DNA of 61,497 nt, the filler included, from Dimorphilus gyrociliatus (lineage: Eukaryota > Animalia > Annelida): assembly GCA_904063045.1 (NCBI GenBank). It is 3 parts of 3 records of this genome, joined end to end, with 100 filler letters (N's around TTAATTAATTAA, not from the genome) between each part and the next. Parts side by side here need not be neighbours in the genome. Positions count along the whole stretch, not along the records: positions 18,930 to 49,936 come from CAJFCJ010000134.1; 2 more parts are not named here. One strand, given 5' to 3'. Under the pieces are notes generated by a model that was not told where the DNA came from, ran no database searches, and worked only from the letters and a program-made list of their open reading frames with translations. Positions 21,901 to 49,936 of this stretch are shown in pieces. Position numbers and translations under genes: made by a program. Numbering within the stretch: position 1 is the first letter of the stretch; every line of letters starts with the position of its first letter.

Positions 21901-24470
21901 AACTGCTACAGATACTACAAAATGTTTGTATGAATTACAAATATTGGCAGATAAAAGAAAATTCTATCATGCTAGTAGACTAAGACTAGCTAACAAACAA
22001 CCTATAACAGTTAACACAGTGACAGTAGGGAAACACCAAACAAATGGTGGAATGCTTCCTATCAGAGGATCAATAATTTATACACTGTTAGCAATATGCT
22101 GTTTAAACTTGGTCCAAGCAAATGTATCCATAACAAAAGCAAACATAACTGTAAGAATGCTACCATCAGTACAGTTTTGTCAAGGACAACAAGTACACCA
22201 ATCATTTGATTTAGCAGATGAACCAGTATGTACCTTTGAAACTAAACAAATGATCAAAATTGTAGCTAACATCTATGAAATTAAAGCTGACAATTTGGCA
22301 ATTCAAGCTGTCAAGTGTTTAGTGAAAAGAAGAATCAATTTCTACACTCATTACTTTTTTGGAGCCAAGAAACACAGAATTGAAAAACAAACACTTGCCT
22401 TAAGTGAAAAACAATGCAGAACAATGCTATACACACACAAAACCTTAAATGGACAAAACCTAATTGAAAAAGGCAAACTTCTTATGTATAATGAAAACAA
22501 AGGAATTTGGCCAAGAACCACAGTGGTGGAAGAATTTACAAACAATCCTTCAAATTGGCAAGGCTTATTGGAATCCAAGTCAAGATAAAATAACCACAAA
22601 TTTGGAATATTTAGAAGACTGTTCTATTAAACAAAAATTTTGTAGAACTTTGGATTCAATCATTATATTTAATCCAGAAAAAGGCCAAAGTCTTCTAGGC
22701 CATGTTTCACCATGGAAAATAGTTTCCCATAATGTGGAATGTGTAAAACTTGGAGGATATTTTTCCTGCCCCAACTATGCAATAATGGATTTACCTTACC
22801 AAGACAGATATATCAAAGGATATGGTGGTCCTGGTACCAGAGTATTGGTACCCCAGAAAGAATATGACTTACTTAGAACTGATCTTACAAATTCTAATTA
22901 TGCTGACAATAAAATAATAGAGGATACAAAATACAAGATCATTTCAAAAAAGAAGTTAATAGATTGGAGAAATATATTGGAAAGAAATCATCACTAAGAA
23001 AGGCCAATGTCACAGAAATACAAGATATTTTAACATATAATGATTGGTATAGAGATGGTGACAAAACCTACCATATGCTGATAAAAAATCATGCAACACC
23101 ATTAGTGAGGACTTGGTTTGTCAAAGAAATTATTTCTCCAGACATCTGGGATATTCACAACAAATACATACTAAAAATGCTGAAAACAACAAAGCTAAAA
23201 CCTGCCAGACAGTAAGATCACAAGATTTTGAATTGGACAAAAAACCAGTTACTTTCAACCCACTCCCAAACATGAACATTTGGTATCAAAGCCCAAAAGA
23301 TACACAATTTCAAATTCATACAGAAAATGGCAAATATACACTTTTACAAAGAAAACCAATAAATCACAAATGGAAGAGGAAACAATTAGAAAACATAGAG
23401 ATTCCAGAATCCCACCAAATAAATATAAAAGATGCTATAAGAACAGCTGCACTACTAAACAATATTGACAAAAATTTTCAAAATTTACAAACAGTTTTTA
23501 AACAAGTTTCACAACTTTTATGCAAAGAATTTATCATGAGAAACAAGATGATAGCCCTACTTACACCACTATCACCTCAACTACCAACAATACTTGGATC
23601 TAAACATGGAACCCATAGTACATGGTTAGGAGATCTAACAACCCTCAATACATGTACAGAATTAAAAACTGTTCAAGTAGTTTGTGACACAACAATTATA
23701 ACAAAAATGGATTATGTTCAAAAGAATTTCTGATCAAATATAAAGATCTCCTATTCTCAATTGATCCAATACTTCATCATGCTTACCACATCACAAAAGA
23801 AGACATAAGATATGGTACATGTGACCAAACTCAGCATCTCTTCAAGATCAAGAAAAATCCTTTGGATGCAGAACAAAATCAATATGCCATACATTCTGGC
23901 AAGAAGACATTTATCTATTATACAAGGAAAGGATGCAGGTTCCAAACAGCAGCAGCACAATCAATCAGAATGAAAATCAACAGTCAAATTGAAGAACCAA
24001 AACTAGAAGTTGTCAGACTCACAGAATTATTACAACTAGGTATAAAAGAAGATGTGGGCAAGAAACATTATCAGATACAACAAGTTTTGGAATACATACA
24101 GGATACTTTGACTAAGCATAGAGAGCATATTAACTTTGCAAATGATTTAGGAATTGATGCAGCCTTGTCACCAACACAACATCTATTTTCTTCATGGATA
24201 AGAAAACCTTTCAAAATACTAATAGACACACTTCTGCCAATTATACTCTTGATTGGAATTGGATTCTTCATCTACTTTATTTGGAAGAAAAAACTGAAAA
24301 GAGTTCAATTTACCAGACTGTCTAAACTACTGACAAAAACAAAAAGATTACCTTCAGCTCCAACAGCTGAATCAGAAGAAATAGAACTGCAAAATTATCC
24401 TATGTTCAGAAAAAGTGGTGATAACATAATTGTCACAAGTCCTAGACCTTTCGTGGAAGCAAGGTCTTAA
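18930..24470 (+). pseudogene. pol: pol-env polyprotein of copy 1, broken by several small indels
   Basis: RT CVDYRKLN...YMDD, RNase H, integrase. Frameshifts relative to copy 2 near 19905, 20115, 21145, 22500-22545, 22950, 23210 and 23705, several in homopolymer runs. Confidence 0.85.
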
Positions 24471-24480
24471 AGGAGTGGGA
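24469..24480 (+). promoter_or_regulatory. polypurine tract (PPT)
   Basis: AAAGGAGTGGGA (one T) immediately before the TG start of the LTR; mirrored at 44686-44697. Confidence 0.8.
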
Positions 24481-25423
24481 TGTTTGTACACATACATTCG
24501 TCAGCTATATTCTACAATAGAGAAGTAGTATTGAACCAGTATTGTACTATGCAGATAGCACTGATAAAGATAGGCAGTAGTGACCTAGTTTCGCATAGGG
24601 CAGTGCATACACATTATGCAGTAATAAAACCTATTGAATTATATAAAGAATATTTGCTATTTGCAACCTAGCATTAATATTACAATTTATTAATCCATAA
24701 ATTTATGATTTCGAACTAAAACTAGTTCAATTAATTATCAATTATGCTTAAATTCTAAGGTTAGATTATATTCACTATTCAACAGTATTGTATACACAAT
24801 ACTGTTCTTTTTAACATGCATTAATCAGATATACTTCCTCCTTATATGCTGATGCTAAATTTACTAACTCAATCAATTGAATATCATTATTAAGGTAGAA
24901 TATAAAAACGGTCAAATATACAATCTACATGTTTTCTTGATTGTTGGACTTGTCCTACTAAAATTGTTACATCTTATGCAACTCTCCAACCTTCGAAATT
25001 CAACTATTATTTAGAAGAGGAAAACAATAAAAACATGACCATATTTAGAACTTTTCTTTGTCTTCAAATGTTACTTTTGTTTTTGTGAACATTGAAATTT
25101 GTGAACTATCAACCCTTAAAAGAGTATATAAACCCTACGAAATTAACAGTTGATAGTTCAGTTTTCTAACCGTCAGCTAGTTGTTTAAACTAGCTTGTTT
25201 AGAACTAGAAGCTCATTTTACTCAATACATATTCTTTGGACGAAATACTGGTGTTTTGTTAATCAATTTCTACCGAAATTGCCTTTGTTAGACTATTTGT
25301 GGACGAACTTTAAAGGTTCTATTTGGACCAGTACTTTGGCAAGTTGGTAAATGATTGGAAAGGACGATTACAGTTGTGACGAACCAGAAATTCCTACAAT
25401 TACAATACAACAAAGTACAATCA
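24481..25423 (+). repeat. 3' LTR of copy 1 (943 bp)
   Basis: Starts TGTTTGTAC after the PPT and ends GTACAATCA (imperfect terminal inverted repeat, TG...CA). Homology to 43743-44685 stops exactly here. Confidence 0.9.
25125..25163 (+). promoter_or_regulatory. putative LTR core promoter (TATA + Inr)
   Basis: TATATAAA at 25125-25132 followed about 30 nt later by TCAGTT (25158-25163); conserved in the other LTR. Confidence 0.55.
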
Positions 25424-25439: not shown

Positions 25440-26935
25440 ATGTGTGATGAAATTGAGCCATTCAAAATTCTTGAAAAGGCAAGTGCTAAAGGGAAAAATG
25501 TGTTGATACATAATGGATATTGGTATACATTAAAGTGTAATCGTGGTGAAACAACATACTGGACTTGTGGTGTAAGAACAAAGAAGCAAAAGTGCAAAGC
25601 TGCAATTACTGAATTGAATTACTCCTATACATTATCTAAAGCTGAGCACTTTCACAGTCCTGTTAAAGACATTGAAAATAAACTTATTTTGAAAAAGAAT
25701 GTCAGGGAGAAAGGCAAAGTTAATGTTCATCAAAATGGGAGAAGCATTGCAGAGGAAACTCTAATTGAATTCAACAAAAATGAATCTTTACCATCAATAA
25801 AATCTTGCATTGAAGTTGTTAACTATCACAAAAGAAAAAATAGACCAAAAGAGCCTACTGGTTTAAGATTTATTATAAAGCAAATGTTCTTACCAGAAAA
25901 CTTCTTGAAAGTGGATATTTTTGAAAAGCAAACAAGAGTAGTAATATTTGCAACAGACCATCAACTTAATCTTTTACAATCAACAAATATTTGGTTCCTT
26001 GATGGAACATTCAAACCTGCAAATGATCCATTCAAGCAATTATACTCCATTCATGGATTTCTAAAAAAAGATTCAGAATTGAAACAAGTCCCTCTCTTAT
26101 TTGCATTCTGCTCATCCAAGAAAAAATCAGCTTATAAAATTATATTCAAGGTAAATAAGATAAATTCAAAATGTATTTCTTTAAATACTGTTAATATTTT
26201 ATAGGCTGTTTTTAAACTGACTAATGGATTTCAACCAAAAACTGCCATGCTAGATTTTGAAGAGAGTGCATGGAGAGCTATGAGTGAATTAGCACCTGAT
26301 GTTAACATAATTGGATGTCTTTTTCACTGGTGTCAAGCAATTTACAGAAAGATTGGGGTAATGTATAAATAAAAAGTTTTTTATAACTTTTTAATAGTTT
26401 TTATTCAATCATTTATTAATAATAGGAGCTTGGACATCAATCACAATATAAAAATCGCACAGGAGAATGGTTTGCAATGAGACTACTCCTCTCTCTACCA
26501 TTTCTACCATCAGATCACATCAAACATCAATTTGAAAGTATAAAAGATTATCTGCAAGAATGTAATGAGTTATCTCAACTGATTTCTTACATTCAAAATA
26601 CATGGATTGATAGTACAATTTGGCCTCCATCAGCTTGGTCATGTTTCAAAAGAGCAATTCGCACAAACAATGATCTGGAAGGCTTCCATCAAAAATTTAA
26701 CTCATCTTTTGGGAATAGAACATCATTCTACATAATTGTTCAAAAGTTGAAACATGAAGCAGATCTAATCAATGTCTTTGAAAAGCTTCTATCTGAAAAG
26801 AAAATCTGCAGAAATCAGAGAAAAACTTATAAGCATCTACAAAAAAAAATCTTTGAAGCTTGGGAAAGTTTTGAAAGATCTGAAATGAATGTTTCTCAAC
26901 TACTGCAACTTTGTTGTTCAATTTATCATCCATAA
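25440..26935 (+). CDS. FLYWCH-type MULE (Mutator-like) transposase, apparently intact, 3 exons (~457 aa)
   Basis: Exons 25440-26150, 26205-26357 and 26426-26935 splice in phase 0. FLYWCH (LIHNGYWY...YWTC...C...H), DGTF, LDFE, CLFH, RTNNDLEGFH. Confidence 0.9.
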
Positions 26936-28957: not shown

Positions 28958-30358
28958 ATGCATAGTTGGTTGAGCTACCAAAAGGAAAAGCAAATCAGCC
29001 CAACATTTATTAATTTCAGTAAAGCAAACCTGATGCTACAGTTAAAATATATTTTTAGAGTATATAAAAATCATGTAAACAACAATTTTGCTAAAACTTT
29101 TGTACCTTTTCTGATGAATCACTTTTTAACAATGTCTTTACTTAGTGATGAAAAGCTGGAAGAAAAAAAAGAATTATTAGATGGATTCAATTTAATTGTA
29201 CAGAATTTTCAAGAAGAATTAACAAAGTTATTAAAGAGATATTATGAAAAGAAAATGAACTTGAAACATTATTTTTATTTGAAACCATTGCTTCAAGCAA
29301 TGGAAAATTGGCAAGAAATAGAAAAGTTACTACATTTTTTTAAAATTAAAATTTTTGGGCCTGAATCAACTGAAATAATAGCTGATGAGCTTTGTGGAGA
29401 AATAAAAAATATTTTTTATGACAATGAGCAGGAAGATCAGGAAGAACAAAATTCTGTGTTAATTAGCCAAGAGCAAGAAGAGGAACACCATCCTGAGAAA
29501 CAAGTGTCAGTAGAACAAGACTCTTCTCAGCAACAGCATCCTGAGGAACAAGTGGCAGTAGAACAAGAGTCTTCTCAGCAACAGCATCCTGAGGAACAAG
29601 TGGCAGTAGAACAAGAGTCTTCTCAGGAACCAGAAGAAATACAACAAGATCATGCTGAAGAACATGAGGAAGATGAAGAACCTGTTGAGGAAGAAGAGGA
29701 TGAACAAGAAGATGTAGAAGAATTTTACTATCATGAGCAGAGGATGGAAGTAGAAAGAGAGGAAATTGATAAGAGTGAACCACAAAATAATGTACAACAA
29801 AGTGATACAAACAATGAAATGTACAAAGTGATGAAAGAGAGAAATGAAGAATTTTTTTTACTAAAAAACATGTGTTATCTCACAAAAATGTACAATTATT
29901 ATATCAATGGGGGAAATGCAGAATCACAAAAACTCATTTTAAAATCTCTAATACCTGATCTTCAAGCAACTGCTAAAATTATTTTTGTTAGCAATTATTT
30001 TATAAATTTAACCAAAAAAGAATTTGATATCATTTTAAAGAATTTGGAGGTAAAGGATATGCAATTTATTCTTTTTAAAAAGTTATCTTTGAAAAGAATA
30101 GAAAATATTTTAATCAACTGGCACCTGGAAAACAAAGTTATTATTTTTGTTGTGAAAAAATATCCAAAAAATCTGGGATTCATACCTTGTGAATTTTTGA
30201 AAAATATTCAAAGAAATACCAACAAGGTTAAAATGGAAAGCCTTTTTAAAATTGCTGGATTCAATTTTATAGATTTCACCTTTAAAAATTATAAAAAAGA
30301 GCAAACTTGTCTCTTAAAATTCATGAAAAAATTTTTAAAACAATTGTATAGACAATAA
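28958..30358 (+). CDS. orphan intronless 466-aa protein with central E/Q-rich region
   Basis: 1.4-kb open frame in very AT-rich DNA, preceded by a polypyrimidine-AG. No recognisable domain. Confidence 0.6.
   Translation: MHSWLSYQKEKQISPTFINFSKANLMLQLKYIFRVYKNHVNNNFAKTFVPFLMNHFLTMSLLSDEKLEEKKELLDGFNLIVQNFQEELTKLLKRYYEKKMNLKHYFYLKPLLQAMENWQEIEKLLHFFKIKIFGPESTEIIADELCGEIKNIFYDNEQEDQEEQNSVLISQEQEEEHHPEKQVSVEQDSSQQQHPEEQVAVEQESSQQQHPEEQVAVEQESSQEPEEIQQDHAEEHEEDEEPVEEEEDEQEDVEEFYYHEQRMEVEREEIDKSEPQNNVQQSDTNNEMYKVMKERNEEFFLLKNMCYLTKMYNYYINGGNAESQKLILKSLIPDLQATAKIIFVSNYFINLTKKEFDIILKNLEVKDMQFILFKKLSLKRIENILINWHLENKVIIFVVKKYPKNLGFIPCEFLKNIQRNTNKVKMESLFKIAGFNFIDFTFKNYKKEQTCLLKFMKKFLKQLYRQ
29489..29627 (+). 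repeat. 48-bp (16-aa) coding tandem repeat, about 3 copies
   Basis: HPEKQVSVEQDSSQQQ / HPEEQVAVEQESSQQQ / HPEEQVAVEQESSQ starting at 29489, 29537 and 29585. Confidence 0.9.
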
Positions 30359-35489: not shown

Positions 35490-36806
35490 ATGAATTATTT
35501 TCTAACCAACTGGACAAAATTTTTCTGGATTTTCTCACTGGCAAAAAATTGTTTGTTATTTTCTACCAATTTCAATAATTCTACTTTCAAAATTGAAAAT
35601 TTCAAAGATGAGAATAAAATTGCAGTTGAAGGATATTTAATTGTCAAAAACAGCAATATTGATTTTTATACAAAATTTACTAGGTTAAGATTTTCTGAAA
35701 ATTTGAAATTATGTAAAGATATGAATTACGATTTTCTACACTCTTATTCGTATCCATGTAAATTAAAGAATGGTACAAATGAATGCATTATTGCGCAATT
35801 GCAATTTAAACCAAATCTCCAATACAAAATGTAAACAAATATTTGAAATTTTTTCAATTCATTCAAAAATCTGCAATATAAAAAATGTTCTAATTTTAGA
35901 TTAAAAGTTAACACTGCAACAACAACTGGAGTAGGTTTATGTATAAAATGCTTTAGAACAACAATTCCATGTAAGTTGCTTACATTTAACCAGTCAGTCA
36001 CTTGATTTAGAATGTTTTTATTTCCTAGACATTTTTGCCAGAAATTCTACAAATGAAAAATCCTTTAATATCCTCCTAAGACACAAAGAAATCAGTTACT
36101 GGATATTTCAATCTTCCAGTGTGGAAATTTGCAAACAACTGCAATTTATTGGAAATTGCGGAATAATTGATTGTAATATCAATGAAGAAAAGTTTATAAA
36201 ATTAATTTATTCAGGACAAACAATAAAAAAGATTGAAAAAGTAGAAAAAATTAAAAAGTCTAAACTAATTTGCACTATTCAAGAATATTTCTGTAAATTT
36301 TTCATATTTTTTCTCTCTTCGTCTCTTTCTTTCTCTCTCTCTATCCCTATCTCTCTGTCTCATCTCTGCGTCATCTCTCTTTCTCTTTATCTCTATCTCT
36401 CTCTTTCTCTCTCTATCTCTTTCTCTCTCTCTCCCTCTCTCTCTATCTCTCTCTCTCTCTCTCGCTCTATCTCCCCCCTTTGTTTCTCCCTCTTTCTCTC
36501 TCTGTCCTCCCCCCTCTCTTTCTATATATATATATCTCTCTCTCTATCTCTCTGCCTCTCTCTGTCTCATCTCTCCCTCATCTCTCTTTCTCTCCCTATT
36601 TCTCTCCCTATCTATCTCCATCTCTCTCTCTCTCTCTCTTTCTCTCTATCTCCCCCCTGTCTTTCTCTCTCTATCTCTCTCTATCTTCCCCTCCTCTCTC
36701 TCTCTTTCTCTCCCTATTTCTCTCCCTATCTATCTCCATCTCTCTATCTCTCTCTTTCTCTCTATCTCCCCCTGTCTTTCTCTCTCTATCTCTCTATCTT
36801 CCCCTC

Positions 36807-36838
<32 letters not shown>

Positions 36839-39800
36839 ATCTCCCCCGTCTCTTTCTCTCTCTATCTCTCTCTATCTTCCCCCCTCTCTCTCTCTATCTC
36901 TCTCTATCTTCCCCTCCTCTCTCTCTCTCTCTTTTCCTCTCTTTCTCTCTCTATCTCTCTTTATCTTTCCCCCCTCATTTAAGCAAAAACAAATTTTTTT
37001 TCAGATTTAGAATATGAATATATAGGAAAAAATCAGAATAGAACATTTGCATTCTTACACATGTTTAATAATATTAAAACTGAATATTTCATATTTTCAA
37101 AAATATTTGGAGTTTTTCCATTAGTTTTCAAGCAACTTGACCATTTGGAATATTATTGTAAAAGATTTTGCACAACTACTAACCACATCTACTATTTCAA
37201 TGCTTGCTATTATAAAACAATAGAAATAGGTGTATGTATAATAAAAGAAGGCAAAATTAACTGTAGCTATAGCAACCAATTTTAATAGCAACCAATATGG
37301 TTCTGCGTAACAACTGCTATAGAGATATACAATTGTGAATATATTGAAGGAGGTATAGGCCGAAATTTTTCAATGTTGGAACTTTCCTGTGTAAAAGGTG
37401 AACAAAAACGGAATGATTAACTAACATAAAATAACATTTTCATAATTTCTTTTCCTCTTTGAAGAGAAAAGCTTTCAATTGAAAACAAAAACATTTTCAA
37501 TGTTACCATGGAAACCACATTCATTAACAAATGTTTCCGGAGATTTTCAATTATATTGGAAAGGTTCTTGGAAAACTATCGTATTCATTCACAGACACGA
37601 ACACGAAATCATTTGTAAAAATTTTGGCTTCAACTATGCAAAAGTTTTAGGTTTGAAGAATGAGAAATTGTCAATTGGATACGGAGACCTTGAAATTATT
37701 TGTGGTAGAGAGGCTAAAAATCTGTCAGATTGTCAAATTGTAGAGAGAAGGTTAGAAAATGAATAATAGAGTAGTTTCTCCCCTTTTCAACACATTTTCT
37801 GTGTAGAAAGGAGAGTAAATAGTTTTTACTTAATTAATTCTTTTTCTCAACTCAGAGGCTATCGAGTTCAAAAATTAGAATTAATTTGTACAAAATTAGA
37901 AGAAAAGTCTTTTCTTTGTCCTGAGAAAAATTCTTACAAATACAATTTAAAGTGCTATTCGTTTTTCCACGAAAGTAACAAGAAGTCTCTCTCTATTTCA
38001 GAGATGGATGAAAAGTGTCAATCATTAAATATGACATTGGCTGATTTTCCAACAATTCATCCTGAGAAATTAATGTTTTTTTTTCAATCCTATTCCACTT
38101 ATAAATTGCTAAAAAGTGGAGAATATATGAACACATTTAACATTTACAATGGTAAAAACCACCTAACACTAACACTGACATTAACACTAATATTACCATA
38201 AACATTAAGATAAACATTACCATAACTACTAACATTAACATTAACATTAACACTAACAATAACATTAACATTAGGATTATTACTAACCCTAACACTAACA
38301 ATAACATTAACCCTAAATCTAACATAAACATTAGGATTATTACTACTTAATCTGACTAACCCTAAAACTAACACTAACACAAACACTAACAATAACACTA
38401 ACCCTAACACTAACACTAACAATAACCATTTAACTCTTCATTTTTCTCCTTTTTACAGTTTTGAGAAACATTGAATTTAAGCGGAAGAAAATTTATGTGA
38501 CGTCATCAAACATTTCCTATCTACTGATTCCATTATATATTCCATCAAACTTGCAAGTACCTTTTATAGATAACTGATTGGGTTACTATGGCTACCAAAT
38601 TTTTTATTTTATTAGATAAAAATGCAGAAAAAACTTTCAGAGAAGTATATAGATGTAGAGAAGGAGAAGCATTTGAAAGGGTCAATATATAGGCGCCATC
38701 TTTGGGAAACGATCCTTAATTTGCATACTAATCACGGAGATTGCGTGGAGTTTTCATTGGTAAAAATTTAAATAATAACTGATTTTATTGCAAAGGAAGA
38801 AGAAACGTTCAGTGATTGATTGATTTATTTAATTATTACACATTTCCTTCTAGGTTTTAGATGAAGATATATCGAGCAAAGTTTGGAAATACGACTACGG
38901 TACGAGTAGGACAATTGGAGTATCTTTCTCTCTCTCTCTCTCTCTCTCTACAGTTAATAATAGACGTTTATCTATTGTTCCAATATTTAGCTTGGAAGAA
39001 CAAAAGGGTTAGTTGTGAGCTAAAGGAAAAATATTACATTTGTCAAAAGTCAATTGGTATGAAAAAAAAAACAAAAAAATTATTTTTTTCTTCTTCTCTT
39101 CCAAAAATGATAAAAAAAAATTAACTGTTGGGTTTTGTTTTTTGTCTTTAAAAGATTTGGAGAAAATTTGGAATAATTTAAAGAATCATTTCAAAATTGC
39201 TCTATATCAAAATCAAACTGTTACAGATCAACAAAACAACAGTTATTTTTGCGAGTTGAGTGAAATATATATTAATATTGTTTATCTATGCGATGGCTTA
39301 TGGGATTGTAGGTTGGGAGAAGATGAAGAGAATTGCTCCTCCTCCGATCAGTTACCAAATCAATTTATTTGCTTTAATTCAACAACTGTTGAAATTAGTT
39401 ATACTTTACTTTGTGATTTTCACAATGATTGCCCCGATGGATCTGATGAAAAATTTTGCGGTGCGGTAGATAATTCTCTTTCTTTGTTGATTTCTTCCAT
39501 TAGACTTTCTCTTCTCTCCCTCATTTTTCAGCTAGAGATAGTTGTAAACATAGTTACGAAATGTATGAATAACAAGTTTGTTAACTAAATCCAGGTCAGT
39601 GTATTCCGTTCGTCTGTCTGTCTTTTAGACAATGCGCAAATAAACAATGCATCTACAAGAATGAAACGTGTGACGAGGTCATCAATTGTTTCGATGAAAG
39701 TGACGAAGAGTGCTTCTCTCCAGCTGCCATTTATCCCAGTTATATCAATAGTAGAACAGCAAATCACTTTCAAACATTTATAGATACAATCAACAAGATT

Positions 39801-42800
39801 TGCAATTTGCAGATTGTAGACTTGACTATCAATTGGAATGTAGAGGGAAATGCGTTCCATTATACGAAGAGTGCGATTATAAGCTCGACTGTGAAAGGGG
39901 AGAGGATGAAAGTCTAAATGTATGTCCCTACGAAATGGAAGAAGAGAACAAAGAGTGCTATTGGACTTATACAAGTCTTGGTAAAACTGACATAAGGCCT
40001 TCGTTTCCCTCCTACCACTTGCGGCATTGCAACAAGGAGGAAATATTTTGTTTTGATGGAGAATTTCATTGTAGGGAACCGAATTATTGCATTTCATTGG
40101 ATTTGGTTTGCGACGGAGTAAACCACTGTTACAACAACGAAGACGAATTATTTTGCGGTAGAGAAAAATAAAACCTCCTGTTTTCAATCAATCATTTCCT
40201 TTCGTTGATTTTTATAGAGGAGAAAATTCAGAGATTTTTATTCAAGTGTCGTCTAACTAGACAATTCCTACCATTAGATATGGTATGCAATGGAAGAATA
40301 GATTGTAAACTTGGTAGCGATGAACTATTCTGTTCCAATCATCTTTTCCCGCCCAACAATTGGTGTAAAAGTCAAATAGTTTACGAATACATTTGTAATT
40401 CTCCTCCAACGGAAAATTCTGAAAGTTTCTCCCACCCGATTATCACTTTGCACCTTTGGGATTATTCATTAAAAAAACTATCGATTTATGGACAATTATT
40501 CCATTTGAAAATTAAACTTTTCAACCCTAATTTAATTTCACTTCTTATCGCGAAGAATAGAAATTTTCGTATTCAATCATTAAAATTCATCCCAAATCTC
40601 CTCTCTCTCTCCTTAACAAACTGTAATATAAAGGAGGTAAAAGGATTAGCATTGAATTTATTACTACTGCAATATCTGGATATTTCCAATAATCATATAA
40701 ATCATATCATTGGATTAGCCGAATGGAAATGTTTCACTTTAATCTATTTAGATATTTCTAACAATCCTTTCGACTTCTTTCCTAACAATATGTCACTTTT
40801 TTCGCGATTAAAATCTCTCAAAATTTCAAACTGCAATTTAAAAAAAATTGGTGAAAATTCATTTAGTAAATTTTCCAGATTACTCCATTTGCATTTGAAT
40901 GGAACAAACTTTCCAGTTTTTAAAAGTCACCAAATTGTGAAGAATTTAATAAATATAAAGAAAGTTTACAATGACAAACTTCTATTGTGCTGTTTAATAT
41001 GGAAATTCATTCATTTGAATGTTACGTGTTTATCCACAAAATCAATTTTCAGCACTTGTTCCAATCTTTTAAGCTCAGCTTATATTAAAGCAATCTTTTG
41101 GTGTTTTGGCTTGTTTGGATTAATAGGAAATATTTCTACTTTGGCAACAATCATTAAATTAAAAGAGTTTTTTAAGGGTTATAGAGTATCATTAGTTTTA
41201 GGAGATTTATTAACTTCCTTCTATATGTTTAGTATTGCAATTGTTGATTTATATTATAAAAATAATTATATTGAAAATGATAAAAATTGGCGGGAAAGTG
41301 GATTTTGTCAATTTCTAGGATCAATGCTAACATTTTCAGTATTAATCTCCTTTTCTAGTCTTTTTCTAATGACTTTAGAAAGGCACCAAGCAATTGTCTA
41401 TACAAACAGTCATTCCATAGTGAAACAATACAACCACCTGTTAAAGCTTGTACTATTTCTAATCTGTTTTTCCTTATCATTTATTCAAACATTGTGGTTT
41501 AAGGTTTGTTTGTTTCTCTGTCTGTCTGTTTATTTATTTGTTTGTTTGTTTGTCTGTTTGTTTGTTTCTCTGTCTGTCTGTCTGTTTGTTTGTTTGTTGG
41601 TCTGTTTGTTTGTTTTTTTTTTTTGTTTCTTTGTCAATTTGTTTGTTTCTCTGTCTGTCTGTCTGTTTGTTTCTTTGTTTGTTTGTTTGTATGTTTTTTT
41701 CTTTTTTGTTTCTTTGTTTCTCTGTCTATCTGATTGTTTGTTTGTTTGTTTCTCTGTCTGGCTGTCTGTTTGTTTGTTTCTTTGTTTGTCTGTCCATCTG
41801 ATTGTTTCTTTGTTTCTTTGTTTGTCTGTCTGTCTGTCTGTTTATTTCTTTATTTGTTTGTTTTTTTTTTAATCCAATTACCATTTAACATGTTTTGCAT
41901 ATTTTTCTTTGCCTTTTTCTTCCAGAATTCATTCCAAAAGACTCCTATCTGCTTTTCCCTTTATATAAGAAGTGAAACAACTGATGGATGGATATTTTCC
42001 TTTCTAACATTCGGCTTGACATTATTAGCACTTAGCGTCATGATTTCTCTTTTGTACATAAAAATAACAATAGCCATTTGTCAATCTTTTCAAAAATTTA
42101 AAAATAACCTTATAGTGAAAAAGAATGCTAAAAAAGTGTTTAAAGTCATTTTCATACTAGTCATTTCTAATGTTATGTGTTCTTTACCTATTTCCATCCT
42201 TGGAATTTTGGCATTTTTTGTCCAAATTCATTTTTCCAATGACATTTATGCTCTTGTTGTTGCTGTATTATTCCCATTCACTTCCTGGTTAAATCCAATA
42301 TTGTATTCTTTAAATGATGTTTTAGATATTTCAAGATATAGACGGAATAAGAAGAGAATAAAAAAGTATATATATAACAGTTGGTCATTGAGATTAAATG
42401 TCCTTGACCTTTCACTATTGATCTTAACTAATTTATCATTTTTCATTAGTATTGAATTGATAGATTTGGTGAAATATAGAACAATAGATCAAGGTAATCT
42501 GTGACGCTTCCCTCATTCAAAACATAAAAATGAGGCAGCAAATTTTCTCATCTTTTCCTTTTTTTTTTGCAGTTTTGACAGTTCTTGAAAATAGTCATTT
42601 CATTATGTTGAATACGTTCTCCAATGAATTTTGCCAACAAATTGAACAAAAGTCGAATGATTTTTATGAAAAATGGGAATTTCAAAAAATGATAAAAGAT
42701 ATTGTAGAAGGAATTTCTCATTTCCATAAAGTTTCAATAACTTTTAAAAGTGATATTTCTTTTGAAAATATCTACTACAAGGTTAATATAACACAATACT

Positions 42801-42984
42801 TCATTTATTCATTCCTCCCTCCCTTTTTTTCTATTCTTAGACAAAGAAAAAAAGATATTTTTTTAAATTGAGAGAATTGATTTATTTAAAAAATGGCAAA
42901 GATAAAGAAGATATTTACTCTATAGGAAAAATTACAAGGAAATGTTTACAAAAATTTACAAGATATTGTGTTATTAAAAATTAA
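35490..42984 (+). CDS. GRL101/RXFP-like receptor, paralog 3: SP, SRCR-like, CTL-like, 6x LDLa, LRR, 7TM, kinase-like tail
   Basis: Signal MNYFLTNWTKFFWIFSLAKNC. SRCR-like GDFQLYWKGSWKTI...IICKNFGF...ICGREAKNLSDC. CTL-like CPEKNSYKYNLKCY...WKNKRVSCELKEKYYICQK. Six LDLa, LRRs, LCCLIWK, ERH, NPILY. Tail exons 42450-42493, 42573-42781 and 42841-42984. Confidence 0.85.
36309..36975. repeat. intronic CT-rich low-complexity microsatellite
   Basis: (CT)n/CTAT/CCCT mosaic between exons of paralog 3. Confidence 0.95.
38160..38425. repeat. intronic (TAACAC/TAACAT/TAACCC)n hexamer microsatellite
   Basis: Degenerate hexamer run inside an intron of paralog 3. Confidence 0.95.
41504..41870. repeat. intronic (TTTG/TCTG)n tetramer microsatellite
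   Basis: Begins at the GT donor after TLWFK and lies upstream of the acceptor near 41925. Confidence 0.95.
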
Positions 42985-43225
42985 TAAGAAATAAACAAAT
43001 AAACAAATAAACAATTTTAAATAAATTAGGGTTACAGGGGGGTTCCTTTTTAGTTGAGTATGCCAACTTGTATATATATGCCTAACTAATAATTTACTAA
43101 AGTCTTTTCATCTGCTGGCATCTGTAGGCTGAGATATTGGAGAAAGAAAATTAACGATTAAAAATTTTTTTCTGTTTTTTTGAATTTTTTTTTTTTTAAA
43201 TTGAACAATTTGAAGGTGTACTGTA

Positions 43226-43815
43226 CTTGCATCCCAAATTTCATTTTCATTTGCCATGGAGGGTAAACTTTCAATAACATCTCTGGCTCTTCCAGTAGTG
43301 TATTTTCTCAGCATTCGAACTCTTTTCTCTTCTGTATCCCAAAGGTTTAATTCACAAGCTGTTTGAAAGTTCCTCTTAAAGGCCCAAGTATCTTTGCTAC
43401 CAGAATAGGGTCTCAGCAAAGTAGTATTAGGTTTCTCATTAGCATCAATTAGAAGACTTGCAATTGTCTTTTCCAAAGCATTATCTTGAATGCCATTATA
43501 ACTGAATTCTGGTTGAGTAGGATCAGGATTAACCATACCTTCAGGAATTGTAGCTGCCCCAGTCATCAAATGGTACTTTAAAAAGCTATTACCATCCACT
43601 TTGGCTCCACTACTTTTAATTCTCAACATTAATTCATTAATTTTTGAAAGATACTCATCTACTTCCTTGGCTCTGGCTTTGTCATTCTCATAAACCAAAA
43701 TAACATTCATTGAAGTAGCATTGTGGGCTGTCGACTGCGCCATATTTGTACTTTGTTGTATTGTAATTGTAGGAAGTCCTAGCTCGTCACTATCAAATTC
43801 GTCCTCTCCAATCAT
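43226..43815 (-). pseudogene. gag: truncated gag (capsid N-terminal part) of a tandem element sharing the 43743-44685 LTR
   Basis: LRPYSGSKDTWAFKRNFQTACELNLWDTEEKRVRMLRKYTTGRARDVIESL is a typical retrotransposon CA motif. It follows LTR and PBS and breaks off near 43226. Confidence 0.8.
43728..43742 (-). promoter_or_regulatory. primer-binding site, tRNA-Ser-like
   Basis: TGGCGCAGTCGACAG directly after the LTR end; close to the complement of a eukaryotic tRNA-Ser 3' end (TGGCGTAGTCGGCAG). Confidence 0.75.
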
Positions 43816-44685
43816 TTACCAATGTGCCAAAGTACTGGTCCAAATAGAACCTTTCAAGTTCGTCCACAAGTAGTCTTAATAAATGTAATTCCAGTAAAAA
43901 TTAACCAACAAACACCAGTATTTCATTCAAAGAATATGTATTTGAGTAAATGAGCTTCTAGTTCTAAACAAGCTAGTTTAAACAACTAGCTGACGGTTAG
44001 AAAACTGAACTATCAACTGTTAATTTCGTAGGGTTTATATACTCTTTTAAGGGTTGATAGTTCACAAATTTCAATGTTCACAAAAACAAAAGTAACATTT
44101 AAAGACAAAGAAAAGTTCTAAATATGGTCATGTTTTTATTGTTTTCCTCTTCTAAATAATAGTTGAATTTCGAAGGTTGGAGAGTTGCATAAGATGTAAC
44201 AATTTTAGTAGGACAAGTCCAACAATCAAGAAAACATGTAGATTGTATATTTGACCGTTTTTATATTCTACCTTAATAATGATATTCAATTGATTGAGTT
44301 AGTAAATTTAGCATCAGCATATAAGGAGGAAGTATATCTGATTAATGCATGTTAAAAAGAACAGTATTGTGTATACAATACTGTTGAATAGTGAATATAA
44401 TCTAAACTTAGAATTTAAGCATAATTGACAATTAATTGAACTAGTTTTAGTTCGAAATCATAAATTTATGGATTAATAAATTGTAATATTAATGCTAGGT
44501 TGCAAATAGCAAATATTCTTTATATAATTCAATAGGTTTTATTACTGCATAATGTGTATGCACTGCCCTATGCGAAACTAGGTCACTACTGCTTATCTTT
44601 ATCAGTGCTATCTGCATAGTACAATACTGGTTCAATACTACTTCTCTATTGTAGAATATAGCTGACGAATGTATGTGTACAAACA
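43743..44685 (-). repeat. LTR (943 bp): 3' LTR of copy 2 and 5' LTR of the downstream truncated element
   Basis: TGTTTGTAC...GTACAAATA on the minus strand, preceded by the PPT and followed by the PBS. Confidence 0.9.
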
Positions 44686-44695
44686 TCCCACTCCT

Positions 44696-47600
44696 TTAAG
44701 ACCTTGCTTCCACGAAAGGTCTAGGACTTGTGACAATTATGTTATCACCACTTTTTCTGAACATAGGATAATTTTGCAGTTCTATTTCTTCTGATTCAGC
44801 TGTTGGAGCTGAAGGTAATCTTTTTGTTTTTGTCAGTAGTTTAGACAGTCTGGTAAATTGAACTCTTTTCAGTTTTTTCTTCCAAATAAAGTAGATGAAG
44901 AATCCAATTCCAATCAAGAGTATAATTGGCAGAAGTGTGTCTATTAGTATTTTGAAAGGTTTTCTTATCCATGAAGAAAATAGATGTTGTGTTGGTGACA
45001 AGGCTGCATCAATTCCTAAATCATTTGCAAAGTTAATATGCTCTCTATGCTTAGTCAAAGTATCCTGTATGTATTCCAAAACTTGTTGTATCTGATAATG
45101 TTTCTTGCCCACATCTTCTTTTATACCTAGTTGTAATAATTCTGTGAGTCTGACAACTTCTAGTTTTGGTTCTTCAATTTGACTGTTGATTTTCATTCTG
45201 ATTGATTGTGCTGCTGCTGTTTGGAACCTGCATCCTTTCCTTGTATAATAGATAAATGTCTTCTTGCCAGAATGTATGGCATATTGATTTTGTTCTGCAT
45301 CCAAAGGATTTTTCTTGATCTTGAAGAGATGCTGAGTTTGGTCACATGTACCATATCTTATGTCTTCTTTTGTGATGTGGTAAGCATGATGAAGTATTGG
45401 ATCAATTGAGAATAGGAGATCTTTATATTTGATCAGAAATTCTTTTGAACATAATCCATTTTTTGTTATAATTGTTGTGTCACAAACTACTTGAACAGTT
45501 TTTAATTCTGTACATGTATTGAGGGTTGTTAGATCTCCTAACCATGTACTATGGGTTCCATGTTTAGATCCAAGTATTGTTGGTAGTTGAGGTGATAGTG
45601 GTGTAAGTAGGGCTATCATCTTGTTTCTCATGATAAATTCTTTGCATAAAAGTTGTGAAACTTGTTTAAAAACTGTTTGTAAATTTTGAAAATTTTTGTC
45701 AATATTGTTTAGTAGTGCAGCTGTTCTTATAGCATCTTTTATATTTATTTGGTGTGATTCTGGAATCTCTATGTTTTCTAATTGTTTCCTCTTCCATTTG
45801 TGATTTATTGGTTTTCTTTGTAAAAGTGTATATTTGCCATTTTCTGTATGAATTTGAAATTGTGTATCTTTTGGGCTTTGATACCAAATGTTCATGTTTG
45901 GGAGTGGGTTGAAAGTAACTGGTTTTTTGTCCAATTCAAAATCTTGTGATCTTACTAGTCTGGCAGGTTTTAGCTTTGTTGTTTTCAGCATTTTTAGTAT
46001 GTACTTGTTGTGAATATCCCAGATGTCTGGAGAAATAATTTCTTTGACAAACCAAGTCCTCACTAATGGTGTTGCATGATTTTTTATCAGCATATGGTAG
46101 GTTTTGTCACCATCTCTATACCAATCATTATATGTTAAAATATCTTGTATTTCTGTGACATTGGCCTTTCTTAGTGATGATTTCTTTCCAATATATTTCT
46201 CCAATCTATTAACTTCTTTATTTGAAATGATCTTGTATTTTGTATCCTCTATTATTTTATTGTCAGCATAATTAGAATTTGTAAGATCAGTTCTAAGTAA
46301 GTCATATTCTTTCTGGGGTACCAATACTCTGGTACCAGGACCACCATATCCTTTGATATATCTGTCTTGGTAAGGTAAATCCATTATTGCATAGTTGGGG
46401 CAGGAAAAATATCCTCCAAGTTTTACACATTCCACATTATGGGAAACTATTTTCCATGGTGAAACATGGCCTAGAAGACTTTGGCCTTTTTCTGGATTAA
46501 ATATAATGATTGAATCCAAAGTTCTACAAAATTTTTGTTTAATAGAACAGTCTTCTAAATATTCCAAATTTGTGGTTATTTTATCTTGACTTGGATTCCA
46601 ATAAGCCTTGCCAATTTGAAGGATTGTTGTAAATTCTTCCACCACTGTGGTTCTTGGCCATTTGTAATTTGGTGCTTTGTTTTCATTATACATAAGAAGT
46701 TTGCCTTTTTCAATTAGGTTTTGTCCATTTAAGGTTTTGTGTGTGTATAGCATTGTTCTGCATTGTTTTTCACTTAAGGCAAGTGTTTGTTTTTCAATTC
46801 TGTGTTTCTTTGCTCCAAAAAAGTAATGAGTGTAGAAATTGATTCTTCTTTTCACTAAACACTTGACAGCTTGAATTGCCAAATTGTCAGCTTTAATTTC
46901 ATAGATGTTAGCTACAATTTTGATCATTTGTTTAGTTTCAAAGGTACATACTGGTTCATCTGCTAAATCAAATGATTGGTGTACTTGTTGTCCTTGACAA
47001 AACTGTACTGATGGTAGCATTCTTACAGTTATGTTTGCTTTTGTTATGGATACATTTGCTTGGACCAAGTTTAAACAGCATATTGCTAACAGTGTATAAA
47101 TTATTGATCCTCTGATAGGAAGCATTCCACCATTTGTTTGGTGTTTCCTTACTGTCACTGTGTTAACTGTTATAGGTTGTTTGTTAGCTAGTCTTAGTCT
47201 ACTAGCATGATAGAATTTTCTTTTATCTGCCAATATTTGTAATTCATACAAACATTTTGTAGTATCTGTAGCAGTTACAAGATATGGTCCACTCCATTTG
47301 CTTGTATTTATTCTGTTCATTCCTTGACCAATGTTTTCATTTCTTATGTGTACCCAATCACCAATTTTGTAAGTTGGAGGTTTTCTTGTAATAGCTTTAT
47401 TAACTCTATCTCTATATTCCTTCTTTTTTAGAACAGATTTGCAAAGTGCTGTTGCTCTAATTTCTTCAAGTTCATGTTTTCTATCAAATAAGAATTTTGT
47501 TGTTGGTTCTAATCTTGGAACTTCCATTAACAGGTCTAAAACATTTCTATTCTTCAATCCAAATAATATTTCATGTGGGGTTTTGCCAGTGCTTCCAACT

Positions 47601-49801
47601 GGAATTTGATTTAAACATGTCTGAATTAATGGTAACTGTCTTGTCCAATCTGTTAATTGTTCCATAACTACATGTTTATGTAGTGCTCTACGAATTTCCA
47701 AATTCTTTCTTTCTACCATTCCATTACTTTGGCTATGGAATGCTGTTGTTTTAATTTTTCGTATTCCCATTGATGTCACCATTTCTGTAAAGATTTCCCC
47801 AAGAAAATTCCTTCCTTGATCTGTGAGAATTTCTTCTGGGATACCAAATATTGGGAAATAGTTGAAAAACAAATGTTTAGAAATTTCCTCAGCTGTTTGA
47901 GTTTTTAGAGGGAATATGTTGGTAAATCTGGACATGTGGTCTATAATGACAAGTATATACTTGTAAGAATCATGTCCAGTCAGAGGTCCCATTATGTCCA
48001 TAGCTATTCTTTGCATTGGTAAAGTTGGGTGAGGTGTTTCAACCAACAGATGTTTGTTGCCTGGTGCTCTTAATTGCTCACAAAATTCACAACTCTTTAT
48101 GTGATCTTTAATTGTTTTCTTTAGCTTTGGGTGCCAGAAAGCTTGCTCCAAAGTGTGAATTGTTATGTCTACACCATAGTGCTCAAATAGTTGATGTTGA
48201 TGAATTTGTCCAAGTAAGTTGGTTAGAGTTGATAGTGGAATTACAAGTAGTGGTTGACAGCCATTTAGATACCATACAAGGTCTTCTTTTACAAACATAG
48301 ATTCAATAAAGTTTCCATATTCATTCAAAGACCCATTATCAATGTTTTCTCCTTCCAATTTGTCTACAACTTTCATTAGTGGAGTATCTAATACTTGTTC
48401 TCTATAGAAGTTTATTTCAACTGGTGTGATTTTTAGTTTCATAATCTGGGCTTGGATTTCAGCTATGTCTTCATCATAATCATTGTCTAGATTGTCATCT
48501 AAACAATCATCTAATTCTTCTAAGTCCTCTGTATCAATATAAAAGCATTTAAGCATATCCTTTCTTTCTGCTAATTGGGGAACTGTATTGCCATTTTGTT
48601 TTTCTTCATTTAATCTTTCCTTAAGTAAATTACGAAAATCAATTACTTCATCAGTTTCACCAATTCTTGATATCCAGTCTGCTCTATTAGTTCTTCCTGG
48701 TATGTATATTATTTCAAAATCCATATCCATAAGTGCCATCACCCATTTAACAGTACTTGTATTCAGTTTGTTTTGTACAAATGTTTGTACCAAATTTTGG
48801 TGATCAGTGTAGAGAAAAAATTTCTTATACTGTAGATAATGGGAGAATTTTTGTACTGCCCAATATACTGCAAAAGCCTCTTTTTGATAAGCTGCATATC
48901 TTAGTTGTGTATTGATTAGGAGCTTGGAAGCAAAAGAAATTGGTTTTCTTATTTTCTTTCCATCTTCTTCCCATTCTTGTTCTAGAACTGCACCAACTGC
49001 ATAATTAGAAGCATCTGTTGTTAAATAGAATGATTTAGTAAAGTCTGGCAGTTGAAGGATTGGGGGCTCTGTCATTGCATTCCTTAGTGTTTCATAAGCT
49101 TCCTCTGCTTTTTTTGTCCATTTCAGTTTTTCTGTCTTTTGGTGTACTTTTAATAATTCTCTCAAAGGTTTTGTGATTTTTGCAAAATCTTTAACAAATC
49201 TTCTATAATAACCACAAAATGCCACAAAACTCAACAGAGTATTTGCAAACATAGGTAATTTGGCATCTTTTATTTTTTGAATCTTTTCAGGATCAGTTTC
49301 AATACCATTCTGTGTAATTCTATGACCAAGGAATTGAACTGATTCTTGTAAGAATGCACATTTGCTCAGTTTAATTCTGAAGTCTTTTTCCTTGATTCTT
49401 TCCATAAGTTTCTGTAGAGCTACAAAGTGTTCTTCCAATGTTTTGGTAAAAACTATAATATCATCCATATAATTAATGCAGAAGTTTTCCAATCCATTAA
49501 TAACAAAATTTGCCATGATATAGCTGAAGTGTGAAGGTGCATTTGCCAAACCAAATGGCATGCGGTTGAATTCAAATAAACCAAATGGTGTAATAAAAGC
49601 AGTTTTCTCCTTATCTTCTTCTTTAATTGGAATATGATGAAATGCACTTGTTAAATCCAATATAGAAAAATATTTGTGGCCTCCTCCAAGCTTATCAAAT
49701 AAATCTTCCTGATGTGGGATTGGATAACAATTCTTTTTTGATTGCTTGTTAAGTTTTCTGTAATCCACACACATTCTTAATGTTCCTTCTTTCTTTTTCA
49801 C
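44696..49801 (-). CDS. pol: RT-RNaseH-integrase-env polyprotein (N-terminally incomplete)
   Basis: RT YMDD; RNase H TDAS...AYQKE...TDH; integrase HHCC, MDIMG / TDQG / MVER and GPY. Then an internal signal peptide (MLPIRGSIIYTLLAICCLNLVQA, Met at 47125), ~810-codon env, TM LLPIILLIGIGFFIYFIW and a cytoplasmic tail. Confidence 0.93.
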   Translation of the reverse strand: MKKKEGTLRMCVDYRKLNKQSKKNCYPIPHQEDLFDKLGGGHKYFSILDLTSAFHHIPIKEEDKEKTAFITPFGLFEFNRMPFGLANAPSHFSYIMANFVINGLENFCINYMDDIIVFTKTLEEHFVALQKLMERIKEKDFRIKLSKCAFLQESVQFLGHRITQNGIETDPEKIQKIKDAKLPMFANTLLSFVAFCGYYRRFVKDFAKITKPLRELLKVHQKTEKLKWTKKAEEAYETLRNAMTEPPILQLPDFTKSFYLTTDASNYAVGAVLEQEWEEDGKKIRKPISFASKLLINTQLRYAAYQKEAFAVYWAVQKFSHYLQYKKFFLYTDHQNLVQTFVQNKLNTSTVKWVMALMDMDFEIIYIPGRTNRADWISRIGETDEVIDFRNLLKERLNEEKQNGNTVPQLAERKDMLKCFYIDTEDLEELDDCLDDNLDNDYDEDIAEIQAQIMKLKITPVEINFYREQVLDTPLMKVVDKLEGENIDNGSLNEYGNFIESMFVKEDLVWYLNGCQPLLVIPLSTLTNLLGQIHQHQLFEHYGVDITIHTLEQAFWHPKLKKTIKDHIKSCEFCEQLRAPGNKHLLVETPHPTLPMQRIAMDIMGPLTGHDSYKYILVIIDHMSRFTNIFPLKTQTAEEISKHLFFNYFPIFGIPEEILTDQGRNFLGEIFTEMVTSMGIRKIKTTAFHSQSNGMVERKNLEIRRALHKHVVMEQLTDWTRQLPLIQTCLNQIPVGSTGKTPHEILFGLKNRNVLDLLMEVPRLEPTTKFLFDRKHELEEIRATALCKSVLKKKEYRDRVNKAITRKPPTYKIGDWVHIRNENIGQGMNRINTSKWSGPYLVTATDTTKCLYELQILADKRKFYHASRLRLANKQPITVNTVTVRKHQTNGGMLPIRGSIIYTLLAICCLNLVQANVSITKANITVRMLPSVQFCQGQQVHQSFDLADEPVCTFETKQMIKIVANIYEIKADNLAIQAVKCLVKRRINFYTHYFFGAKKHRIEKQTLALSEKQCRTMLYTHKTLNGQNLIEKGKLLMYNENKAPNYKWPRTTVVEEFTTILQIGKAYWNPSQDKITTNLEYLEDCSIKQKFCRTLDSIIIFNPEKGQSLLGHVSPWKIVSHNVECVKLGGYFSCPNYAIMDLPYQDRYIKGYGGPGTRVLVPQKEYDLLRTDLTNSNYADNKIIEDTKYKIISNKEVNRLEKYIGKKSSLRKANVTEIQDILTYNDWYRDGDKTYHMLIKNHATPLVRTWFVKEIISPDIWDIHNKYILKMLKTTKLKPARLVRSQDFELDKKPVTFNPLPNMNIWYQSPKDTQFQIHTENGKYTLLQRKPINHKWKRKQLENIEIPESHQINIKDAIRTAALLNNIDKNFQNLQTVFKQVSQLLCKEFIMRNKMIALLTPLSPQLPTILGSKHGTHSTWLGDLTTLNTCTELKTVQVVCDTTIITKNGLCSKEFLIKYKDLLFSIDPILHHAYHITKEDIRYGTCDQTQHLFKIKKNPLDAEQNQYAIHSGKKTFIYYTRKGCRFQTAAAQSIRMKINSQIEEPKLEVVRLTELLQLGIKEDVGKKHYQIQQVLEYIQDTLTKHREHINFANDLGIDAALSPTQHLFSSWIRKPFKILIDTLLPIILLIGIGFFIYFIWKKKLKRVQFTRLSKLLTKTKRLPSAPTAESEEIELQNYPMFRKSGDNIIVTSPRPFVEARS

Positions 49802-49936
49802 AAAAACAATGGGTGAAGCCCATTGGTTTTGCTTGCTCTAATTAGACCATTTTCCAATAATCCATTTAATTGATCCCTGCATTCCTGCTGTTTGTTGGGT
49901 GGCAATCTGTATGGTCTTTGTTTGAAAGGCTTTATA

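Follow-up and report, generated by a model that had tools for sequence, protein, structure and literature searches.

A probable non-catalytic kinase remnant at the C-terminus of an LGR-type receptor in the annelid Dimorphilus gyrociliatus

The window analyzed here is a stretch of 61,497 nucleotides (nt, filler included) from Dimorphilus gyrociliatus (assembly GCA_904063045.1), composed of 3 parts of 3 records joined by 100 filler letters between each part and the next. The part at 18930-49936 (CAJFCJ010000134.1, ~30% G+C) contains one receptor gene on the + strand, and the Pfam matches of this gene (LDLa modules, leucine-rich repeats (LRRs) and 7tm_1) indicate an LDLa+LRR receptor with a seven-transmembrane (7TM) region. 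Behind the 7TM region, a spliced tail adds 131 residues to the receptor, in frame and at its C-terminus. The best overall explanation for this tail is a kinase-derived, non-catalytic module, to which we assign a probability of roughly 0.68. Judging from the sequence comparisons described below, the tail probably descends from a eukaryotic protein kinase domain. The evidence for a kinase remnant is statistical and sub-threshold, and by curated criteria the tail is outside the kinase family.

The 7TM exon stops at 42365 with a GT donor, and three small exons of 44, 209 and 144 nt then complete the gene, preceded by introns of 84, 79 and 59 nt, respectively, all GT..AG. These exon sizes are exactly those proposed in an earlier reading made from the sequence alone (hereafter the sequence-only reading), and the peptides quoted there are present in the translations; in the window the tail reads MIKDIVEGISHFHKVSITFKSDISFENIYYK, then KEDIYSIGKITRKCL. 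Evidence for splicing comes from contigs of two runs, X2 and X4, neither of which is labelled RNA. X2 derives from another strain or a close species, and is ~2% different from the window sequence. Contig 13 of X2 joins 41503>41926, 42365>42450 and 42493>42573 and continues in frame from transmembrane helices (TM) 3/4 into the 209-nt exon, to 42711, and contig 18 of X4 extends up to 42365 and then adds the 44-nt exon's first 10 letters. The upstream LDLa exons are likewise joined in X2 contigs. Splicing in the X2 and X4 contigs shows that the receptor is expressed, and it establishes the first two tail junctions. The third junction (42781>42841) was seen in no listed contig of the runs examined, and is predicted from comparison with five other genes of the family, which share its GT/AG sites, its phase 0 and an open last exon. 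The features of the tail are as follows.

42450..42493, + strand: tail exon 1, 44 nt (IELIDLVKYRTIDQ), either a linker or possibly the beta4 region; both junctions found in X2, the first also in X4.
42573..42781, + strand: tail exon 2, 209 nt, with kinase-like beta5, alphaD, alphaE (including the invariant His of 'YLH') and a degenerate catalytic loop, KSDISFENI; identified by Pfam, PDB profile, Atlas, hhalign and hmmsearch.
42841..42984, + strand: tail exon 3, 144 nt including the TAA stop at 42982-42984, with a short beta7/beta8-like stretch, an alphaF-like DIYSIG helix and the end of the protein, lacking DFG and activation segment; identified by the three-sequence PDB profile and hhalign.
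42990..43013, + strand: three AATAAA motifs just past the stop, likely polyadenylation signals judging from their sequence.

At 42462-42463, within the 44-nt exon, CA replaces the AG of the window in X2 and in X1, the run from which the window probably stems. This allele or assembly difference changes Asp to Asn.

Of 24,736 Pfam families, Pkinase is the best match for the 209-nt exon of the window (E 0.0016, 18.4 bits), and the alignment spans profile positions 70-130, from beta5 to the catalytic loop, in register. Pkinase recurs in three of eight paralogous tail exon 2 sequences, and no other Pfam family recurs. None of 60 composition-matched decoys, 68-residue pieces taken from unrelated parts of in-clade proteins, matched Pkinase at E<0.05. 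Searches of the PDB with profiles of tail exon 2 built from 3, 5 and 8 sequences returned kinases as 57/60 among the matches listed, as 42/42, and as 60/60 among the matches listed, respectively. All of these kinase matches align at alphaD, alphaE and the catalytic loop (best E 0.011-0.066). The three-sequence profile of the last exon matched kinase folds at alphaF in 15 of 17 PDB matches, the top one being the kinase-homology domain of guanylyl cyclase C, and chain 8fx4_D of this protein was also matched colinearly by the exon 2 profile. In the ESM Atlas, which uses a language model, 29 of the 30 nearest named clusters to exon 2 of the window are kinases (top score 0.95), and the same count was obtained for the exon 2 of L013, a paralog that is only 14% identical (top score 0.94). 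A score of 0.95 is, as stated for the method, reached by shuffled proteins about once in 100.

We also compared the six spliced tails with an independent alignment of 11 kinases, for which two eukaryote-type kinases from a metagenome scan (L024 and L025) and ten usable bacterial Hanks kinases from a genome scan served as sources. In the two best hhalign alignments, which are colinear and in register, tail positions 49-89 correspond to the stretch from alphaE through the HRD loop to beta7 (score 21.7, P 0.017) and positions 103-114 to alphaF (score 21.8, P 0.016). Controls remained lower: 19.9 was the maximum among 200 column shuffles (mean 10.7), reversing the alignment gave 9.8, and 20 blocks of the unrelated receptor alignment gave 8.1-13.9. 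Against the one complete eukaryotic kinase, the colinear chain has a score of 40.2, compared with at most 31.1 for 150 unrelated real proteins (99th percentile 21.8). With hmmsearch and a hidden Markov model (HMM) of the same 11 kinases, the window's tail reaches 12.0 bits, whereas its 300 residue shuffles stay at or below 3.8; five of the six tails outscore all 300 of their own shuffles, and reversed tails score -2 to -3. The tail thus performs better than shuffled sequence, a comparison that the sequence-only reading had named as one test of its kinase assignment, and the in-register similarity to alphaE and the catalytic loop exceeds that of shuffled, reversed and decoy controls. The likeness to the kinase core extends from approximately beta4/beta5 over alphaD, alphaE and the catalytic loop to alphaF, with order and register correct, albeit with sub-threshold scores. 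The two eukaryote-type comparators are themselves complete LRR-kinase genes on metagenome contigs (L024 2831-3760, ROCO/TKL-like, and L025 3647-4228, RLK-like), and were used as comparators only.

In the HMM alignments the tail begins near beta4/beta5 and continues through the hinge, alphaD and alphaE into the degenerate loop, and its invariant His aligns with the His that closes the kinase 'YLH' motif. Only ~30 residues precede the beta5-like stretch, and the Gly-rich loop (GxGxxG) and VAIK lysine of beta1-beta3 are absent. The distance from catalytic loop to alphaF is ~33 residues rather than the ~55 found in kinases, which implies that DFG and the activation segment are missing; APE is likewise absent, and the protein terminates ~20 residues past the alphaF motif. 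Motif searches (G.G..G, [HY]RD, D[FLY]G and [AS]PE) found no instance in the six spliced tails, in agreement with the earlier claim that Gly-rich loop, VAIK Lys and DFG are gone. Because the Gly-loop, VAIK Lys, HRD, DFG, APE and everything past alphaF are absent, it follows directly that the tail should lack catalysis, being able neither to bind ATP normally nor to phosphorylate. The sequence-only reading of a 'catalytically dead, truncated C-lobe' is therefore apt as regards dead and truncated, but the tail is not a pure C-lobe, given that it starts in the N-lobe strands beta4/beta5. That reading had also aligned KSDISFENI with HRDIKPENI and taken Asp and Asn to be retained. The loop is in register and the window does have both residues (KSDISFEN), but this is not a feature of the family. 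Retention of Asp/Asn carries little weight: the D/N position shifts by one or two columns from paralog to paralog, and no residue is commoner than N in these AT-rich proteins. At the alphaF position (DxWSxG in kinases), three members have DIYSIG, DIYSYG and DIFNFG, and three others NIENFG, NILTLG and DILSAG.

The tail was compared with that of seven related genes (L001, L003, L004/L005, L006, L007, L010 and L013), and a homologous tail follows the 7TM region in all seven. The 44-nt exon is in the same place in six of them (L001, L003, L005, L006, L007 and L013), with an unclear boundary in L010. Tail exon 2 is 212 nt long in L001 and 206 nt in both L006 and L010, and it has the window's length of 209 nt in L003, L007 and L013. 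Only five of the seven related genes have a readable last exon, because the L004/L005 contigs stop inside tail exon 2 and L006 is truncated; this exon is 126-150 nt long and its phases are unchanged. In pairwise comparison the tails are 17-32% identical (mean 23%). From the alphaE-like helix to the C-terminus, ~75 residues, the six complete tails align without a single indel, and the invariant positions comprise one His, one Gly and several hydrophobic residues. The absence of indels in six members at ~23% identity points to a module that is folded and under constraint, and not to a disordered tail. In L006 (coral metagenome, Tara Pacific), positions 2918-3100 show a last exon that is apparently lost or shortened: stops occur after every candidate acceptor, and a DVNYF-stop remnant lies downstream.

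Several results weigh against a kinase origin. The Pfam score of the 209-nt exon (18.4 bits) misses the curated cut-off of 31.7 bits, and the best PDB E-value is 0.011. Adding paralogs to the profile brought no improvement, the PDB E-value moving from 0.011 to 0.066 and then 0.016. The last exon alone matches no kinase in Pfam and none in the Atlas, and its kinase signal in the PDB search is lost when the profile is extended to six sequences. Scored singly against the tail profiles, typical kinases reach only 0-5 bits, and the Escherichia coli kinase YegI, used as a comparator, gave no signal to the tail. Some bacterial kinases align without gaps in such a way that DIYSIG falls on the activation-loop region and not on alphaF. 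Decoys produced one-off spurious Pfam matches down to E 0.0014. E-values are ~10-fold optimistic for N/K/I/F-rich peptides such as those of the tail, and consequently a single Pfam match is weak on its own. AlphaFold2 modelled the 209-nt exon by itself as one long helix (residues 16-51, predicted local distance difference test score 68), with no alphaD/alphaE hairpin. Finally, none of the eight family genes has a fuller or complete kinase domain.

These results would be accounted for if the tail were a cytoplasmic domain with no relation to kinases, specific to the lineage and mostly helical, in which 'GIxFxH ... NI' and 'DIYSxG' arose by chance or convergence in AT-rich sequence of low diversity. 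The concentration of the kinase likeness in two short blocks is what such a domain would predict, as are the sub-threshold scores throughout and the near-zero scores of individual kinases. The family has also supplied one misleading likeness. An intron of L001, read as coding, mimicked an Abl-like 'beta5' strand; this candidate was ruled out by the conserved 44-nt exon. We nevertheless consider an unrelated domain fairly unlikely. Kinases rank first in four kinds of method (Pfam, PDB profiles, language-model features, and hhalign/hmmsearch with our own kinase model), and the signal reappears in paralogs that are 13-23% identical. Both motifs are in register and follow the kinase order, and the scores are higher than those from unrelated real alignments, from reversed sequences and from shuffles of columns or residues.

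Alternatively, the tail could be kinase-derived and yet a decaying, functionless relic, whose 3' exons are kept for the stop codon and polyadenylation site, or for a trafficking signal. All catalytic motifs are gone, the catalytic-loop residues drift, and mean tail identity among paralogs (23%) is below that of the receptor core (25-36%). The apparent loss or truncation of the L006 last exon implies that the module is not indispensable everywhere. Neutral decay at such divergence would, however, have brought frameshifts and length changes, whereas open frames, splice sites, exon layout and phases are preserved in the genes examined, no indel occurs in the ~75 aligned residues, and the His, Gly and hydrophobic core positions are invariant. 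X2 differs from the window at none of 141 nt of tail exon 2, compared with 12 of 442 nt in the TM5-7 exon; these counts are consistent with constraint, and alone are not significant. We regard a functionless relic as unlikely. It is extremely improbable that the tail is half of a split enzyme, pairing in trans with a separate N-lobe-like protein or with the tail of another receptor and so rebuilding an ATP site: Asp and Asn at canonical spacing in L007 (KDYKLKNN, D-x-K-x-x-N-like) and in the window might hint at this, but the tails lack DFG, a metal-binding Asp and an activation segment, the paralogs do not conserve a column with the catalytic Asp, and there is no known partner.

Under the preferred reading, that of a kinase-derived, non-catalytic module, the tail would have retained approximately beta4/beta5, the hinge, alphaD, alphaE, a degenerate catalytic loop, beta7/beta8 and alphaF, and would have lost beta1-beta3 (with Gly-rich loop and VAIK Lys), alphaC, DFG, ~25 residues of the activation segment, APE and alphaG-alphaI. 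The pattern in the tails is one in which structural-core positions are kept and catalytic ones are lost. On this reading the truncated form is old, and all the family members examined have it with exon layout and phases unchanged. We hypothesize that the module folds and serves, without catalysis, as a structural or docking element at the receptor's cytoplasmic face, where it could recruit partners, mediate receptor-receptor contacts, or regulate coupling to G proteins or arrestin. A scaffold or regulatory role of this kind is a tentative proposal with somewhat less than even odds, made by analogy because kinase-homology domains and pseudokinases act in this way elsewhere. It is possible, though unlikely, that the family derives from a true fusion between a G-protein-coupled receptor with leucine-rich repeats (LGR) and a kinase, that is, a hormone-receptor-type animal G-protein-coupled receptor (GPCR) with its own kinase output, and that members, or sister families, with a complete, possibly active kinase may persist in the lineage. 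Were this the case, metazoan GPCR signalling by direct phosphorylation would become experimentally accessible.

Fusions of GPCRs with kinases (GPCR-TKL/K and GPCR-TK, among the 'GPCR-bigrams') have been described in oomycetes and amoebozoans (PMC6033456, PMC5784254), and were recently reported in acanthoecid choanoflagellates and sponges, none of them functionally characterized (PMC12716839). Such fusions arose repeatedly, and the D. gyrociliatus receptor would share with them a 7TM region followed by a protein-kinase-derived cytoplasmic module at the C-terminus. They differ in that the described fusions have complete kinase domains found by standard domain searches, on 7TM regions that are not LGR-type, whereas the tail here corresponds to about half a domain without catalytic motifs, on a metazoan-type LDLa+LRR receptor of the rhodopsin family. 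A C-terminal kinase found by standard domain search defines GPCR-TK/TKL; here that search yields a sub-threshold remnant only, and the receptor is not a GPCR-TK/TKL as defined.

The sequence-only reading had drawn an analogy to the kinase-homology domain of receptor guanylyl cyclases, and this fits the finding that the guanylyl cyclase C domain (PDB 8fx4) is the best PDB match of the last exon. Both would be inactive kinase-like modules attached to a membrane receptor, in the cyclases between the receptor and a cytoplasmic output. The cyclase domain is, however, complete and bilobal, binds ATP allosterically and is followed by the cyclase, whereas the 131-residue tail lacks beta1-3, alphaC, DFG and alphaG-I, is not bilobal, and ends the protein. 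Pseudokinases of the tyrosine kinase-like (TKL) group (IRAK3, RIPK-type and RAF-type cores) are among the better PDB matches and exemplify non-catalytic or scaffold uses of the kinase fold, but they are full-length domains. We know of no pseudokinase that is cut off after alphaF with its activation segment deleted. Such a natural minimal kinase core (alphaE, catalytic loop and alphaF) could serve as a tool to ask what a pseudokinase fragment still does.

With LDLa modules, an LRR ectodomain and a rhodopsin-type 7TM region in one gene (Pfam matches and X2 joins), the receptor resembles type C LGRs (RXFP1/RXFP2 and GRL101-like), and its nearest named relatives are animal LGR-like proteins. It differs from known type C members, whose tails have no kinase-like signal, and the family described here has several LDLa modules and a three-exon tail. 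The distant full-length LGRs from Amphiura, Ylistrum and ENA proteins have no kinase-like tail, and a metagenome scan returned distant LGRs only, all without the tail. A literature search for LGRs in combination with pseudokinases found nothing relevant, and a kinase-remnant tail on an LGR-type receptor is a combination not described for this receptor type. We suggest that a GPCR-kinase combination arose, and then degenerated to a non-catalytic module, within the relaxin/GRL101-like receptor lineage.

The Pfam match regions of the receptor are 39040-39470, 39800-40171 and the start of 40205-41503 for LDLa, the remainder of 40205-41503 for LRRs and 7tm_1 positions 14-120, and 41926-42363 for 7tm_1 positions 134-260. 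Upstream of the tail, the mapped features of the gene are as follows.

39223..39459, + strand: part of a receptor ectodomain exon with two LDLa modules (Pfam Ldl_recept_a E 1.8e-12, two stretches); X2 joint 39459/60>39531.
39824..40156, + strand: exon with a further two LDLa modules (Pfam Ldl_recept_a E 3e-9, two stretches); X2 contig 9, joints 39750>39824 and 40156>40218.
40218..41503, + strand: large exon with one LDLa module, the LRR region and TM1 to TM4 with an ERH motif (Pfam LRR_4/LRR_8, Ldl_recept_a and 7tm_1 positions 14-120).
41504..41925, + strand: intron with a ~370-nt (GTTT/GTCT)n microsatellite, recognized from sequence and skipped in X2 contig 13.
41926..42365, + strand: exon with TM5-TM7 (NPILY) and the basic helix-8 region (Pfam 7tm_1 E 2.8e-8, positions 134-260); 39-46% identity to L001/L004/L006.

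The large exon (40218..41503) is 35-36% identical to the open reading frames (ORFs) P0001/P0014, and is spliced to 41926 in X2 contig 13. Logan contigs break at the microsatellite between the TM4 and TM5 exons (41506-41875), and also at a CT-rich tract upstream of the receptor gene (36400-37000, GC skew -0.68).

In Logan assemblies of a relative (23-26% G+C), exon-sized ORFs related to the LRR+TM1-4 exon occur. An exhaustive profile search with this exon recovered more than 100 cluster representatives (at 50% identity) from a few Logan assemblies, a number that indicates a very large lineage-specific receptor expansion. Homologue searches with the LRR-TM1-4 exon and with P0001 returned four in-clade ORFs only, and the same type of search with the TM5-7 exon returned no match. 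The tail may offer a handle on the signalling of these expanded orphan receptors. The genome that carries the expansion is AT-rich (23-26% G+C) and gene-dense, and neighbouring genes (a zinc alcohol dehydrogenase, a PALP enzyme and an F5/8 type C protein) are single long ORFs.

The receptor gene and its neighbours are bracketed by two inverted copies of a Ty3/Gypsy-like retroelement, at 19243-25420 (+ strand) and 43746-49936 (- strand), with 99.1% identity across 6.2 kb. An intact ORF of 1701 amino acids (aa) in the right copy comprises RVT_1, RNase H, integrase and a ~900-aa extension. This extension ends in a hydrophobic stretch, and an env-like part is therefore suggested. The left copy is broken into several ORFs. 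Directly upstream of the intact pol ORF, in the orientation of the element, is a 235-aa ORF (43108-43815, - strand) with no Pfam matches, possibly gag. Two further loci lie on the + strand between the left copy and the receptor exons. A 466-aa ORF at 28958-30358 has an acidic repeat region (repeated ...QQHPEEQVAVEQESS...) and no convincing family, and the region at 25440-26935 contains two ORFs, one of 254 aa that encodes a FLYWCH zinc finger (E 3e-9) and a second of 152 aa; they have the appearance of a transposase-derived gene.

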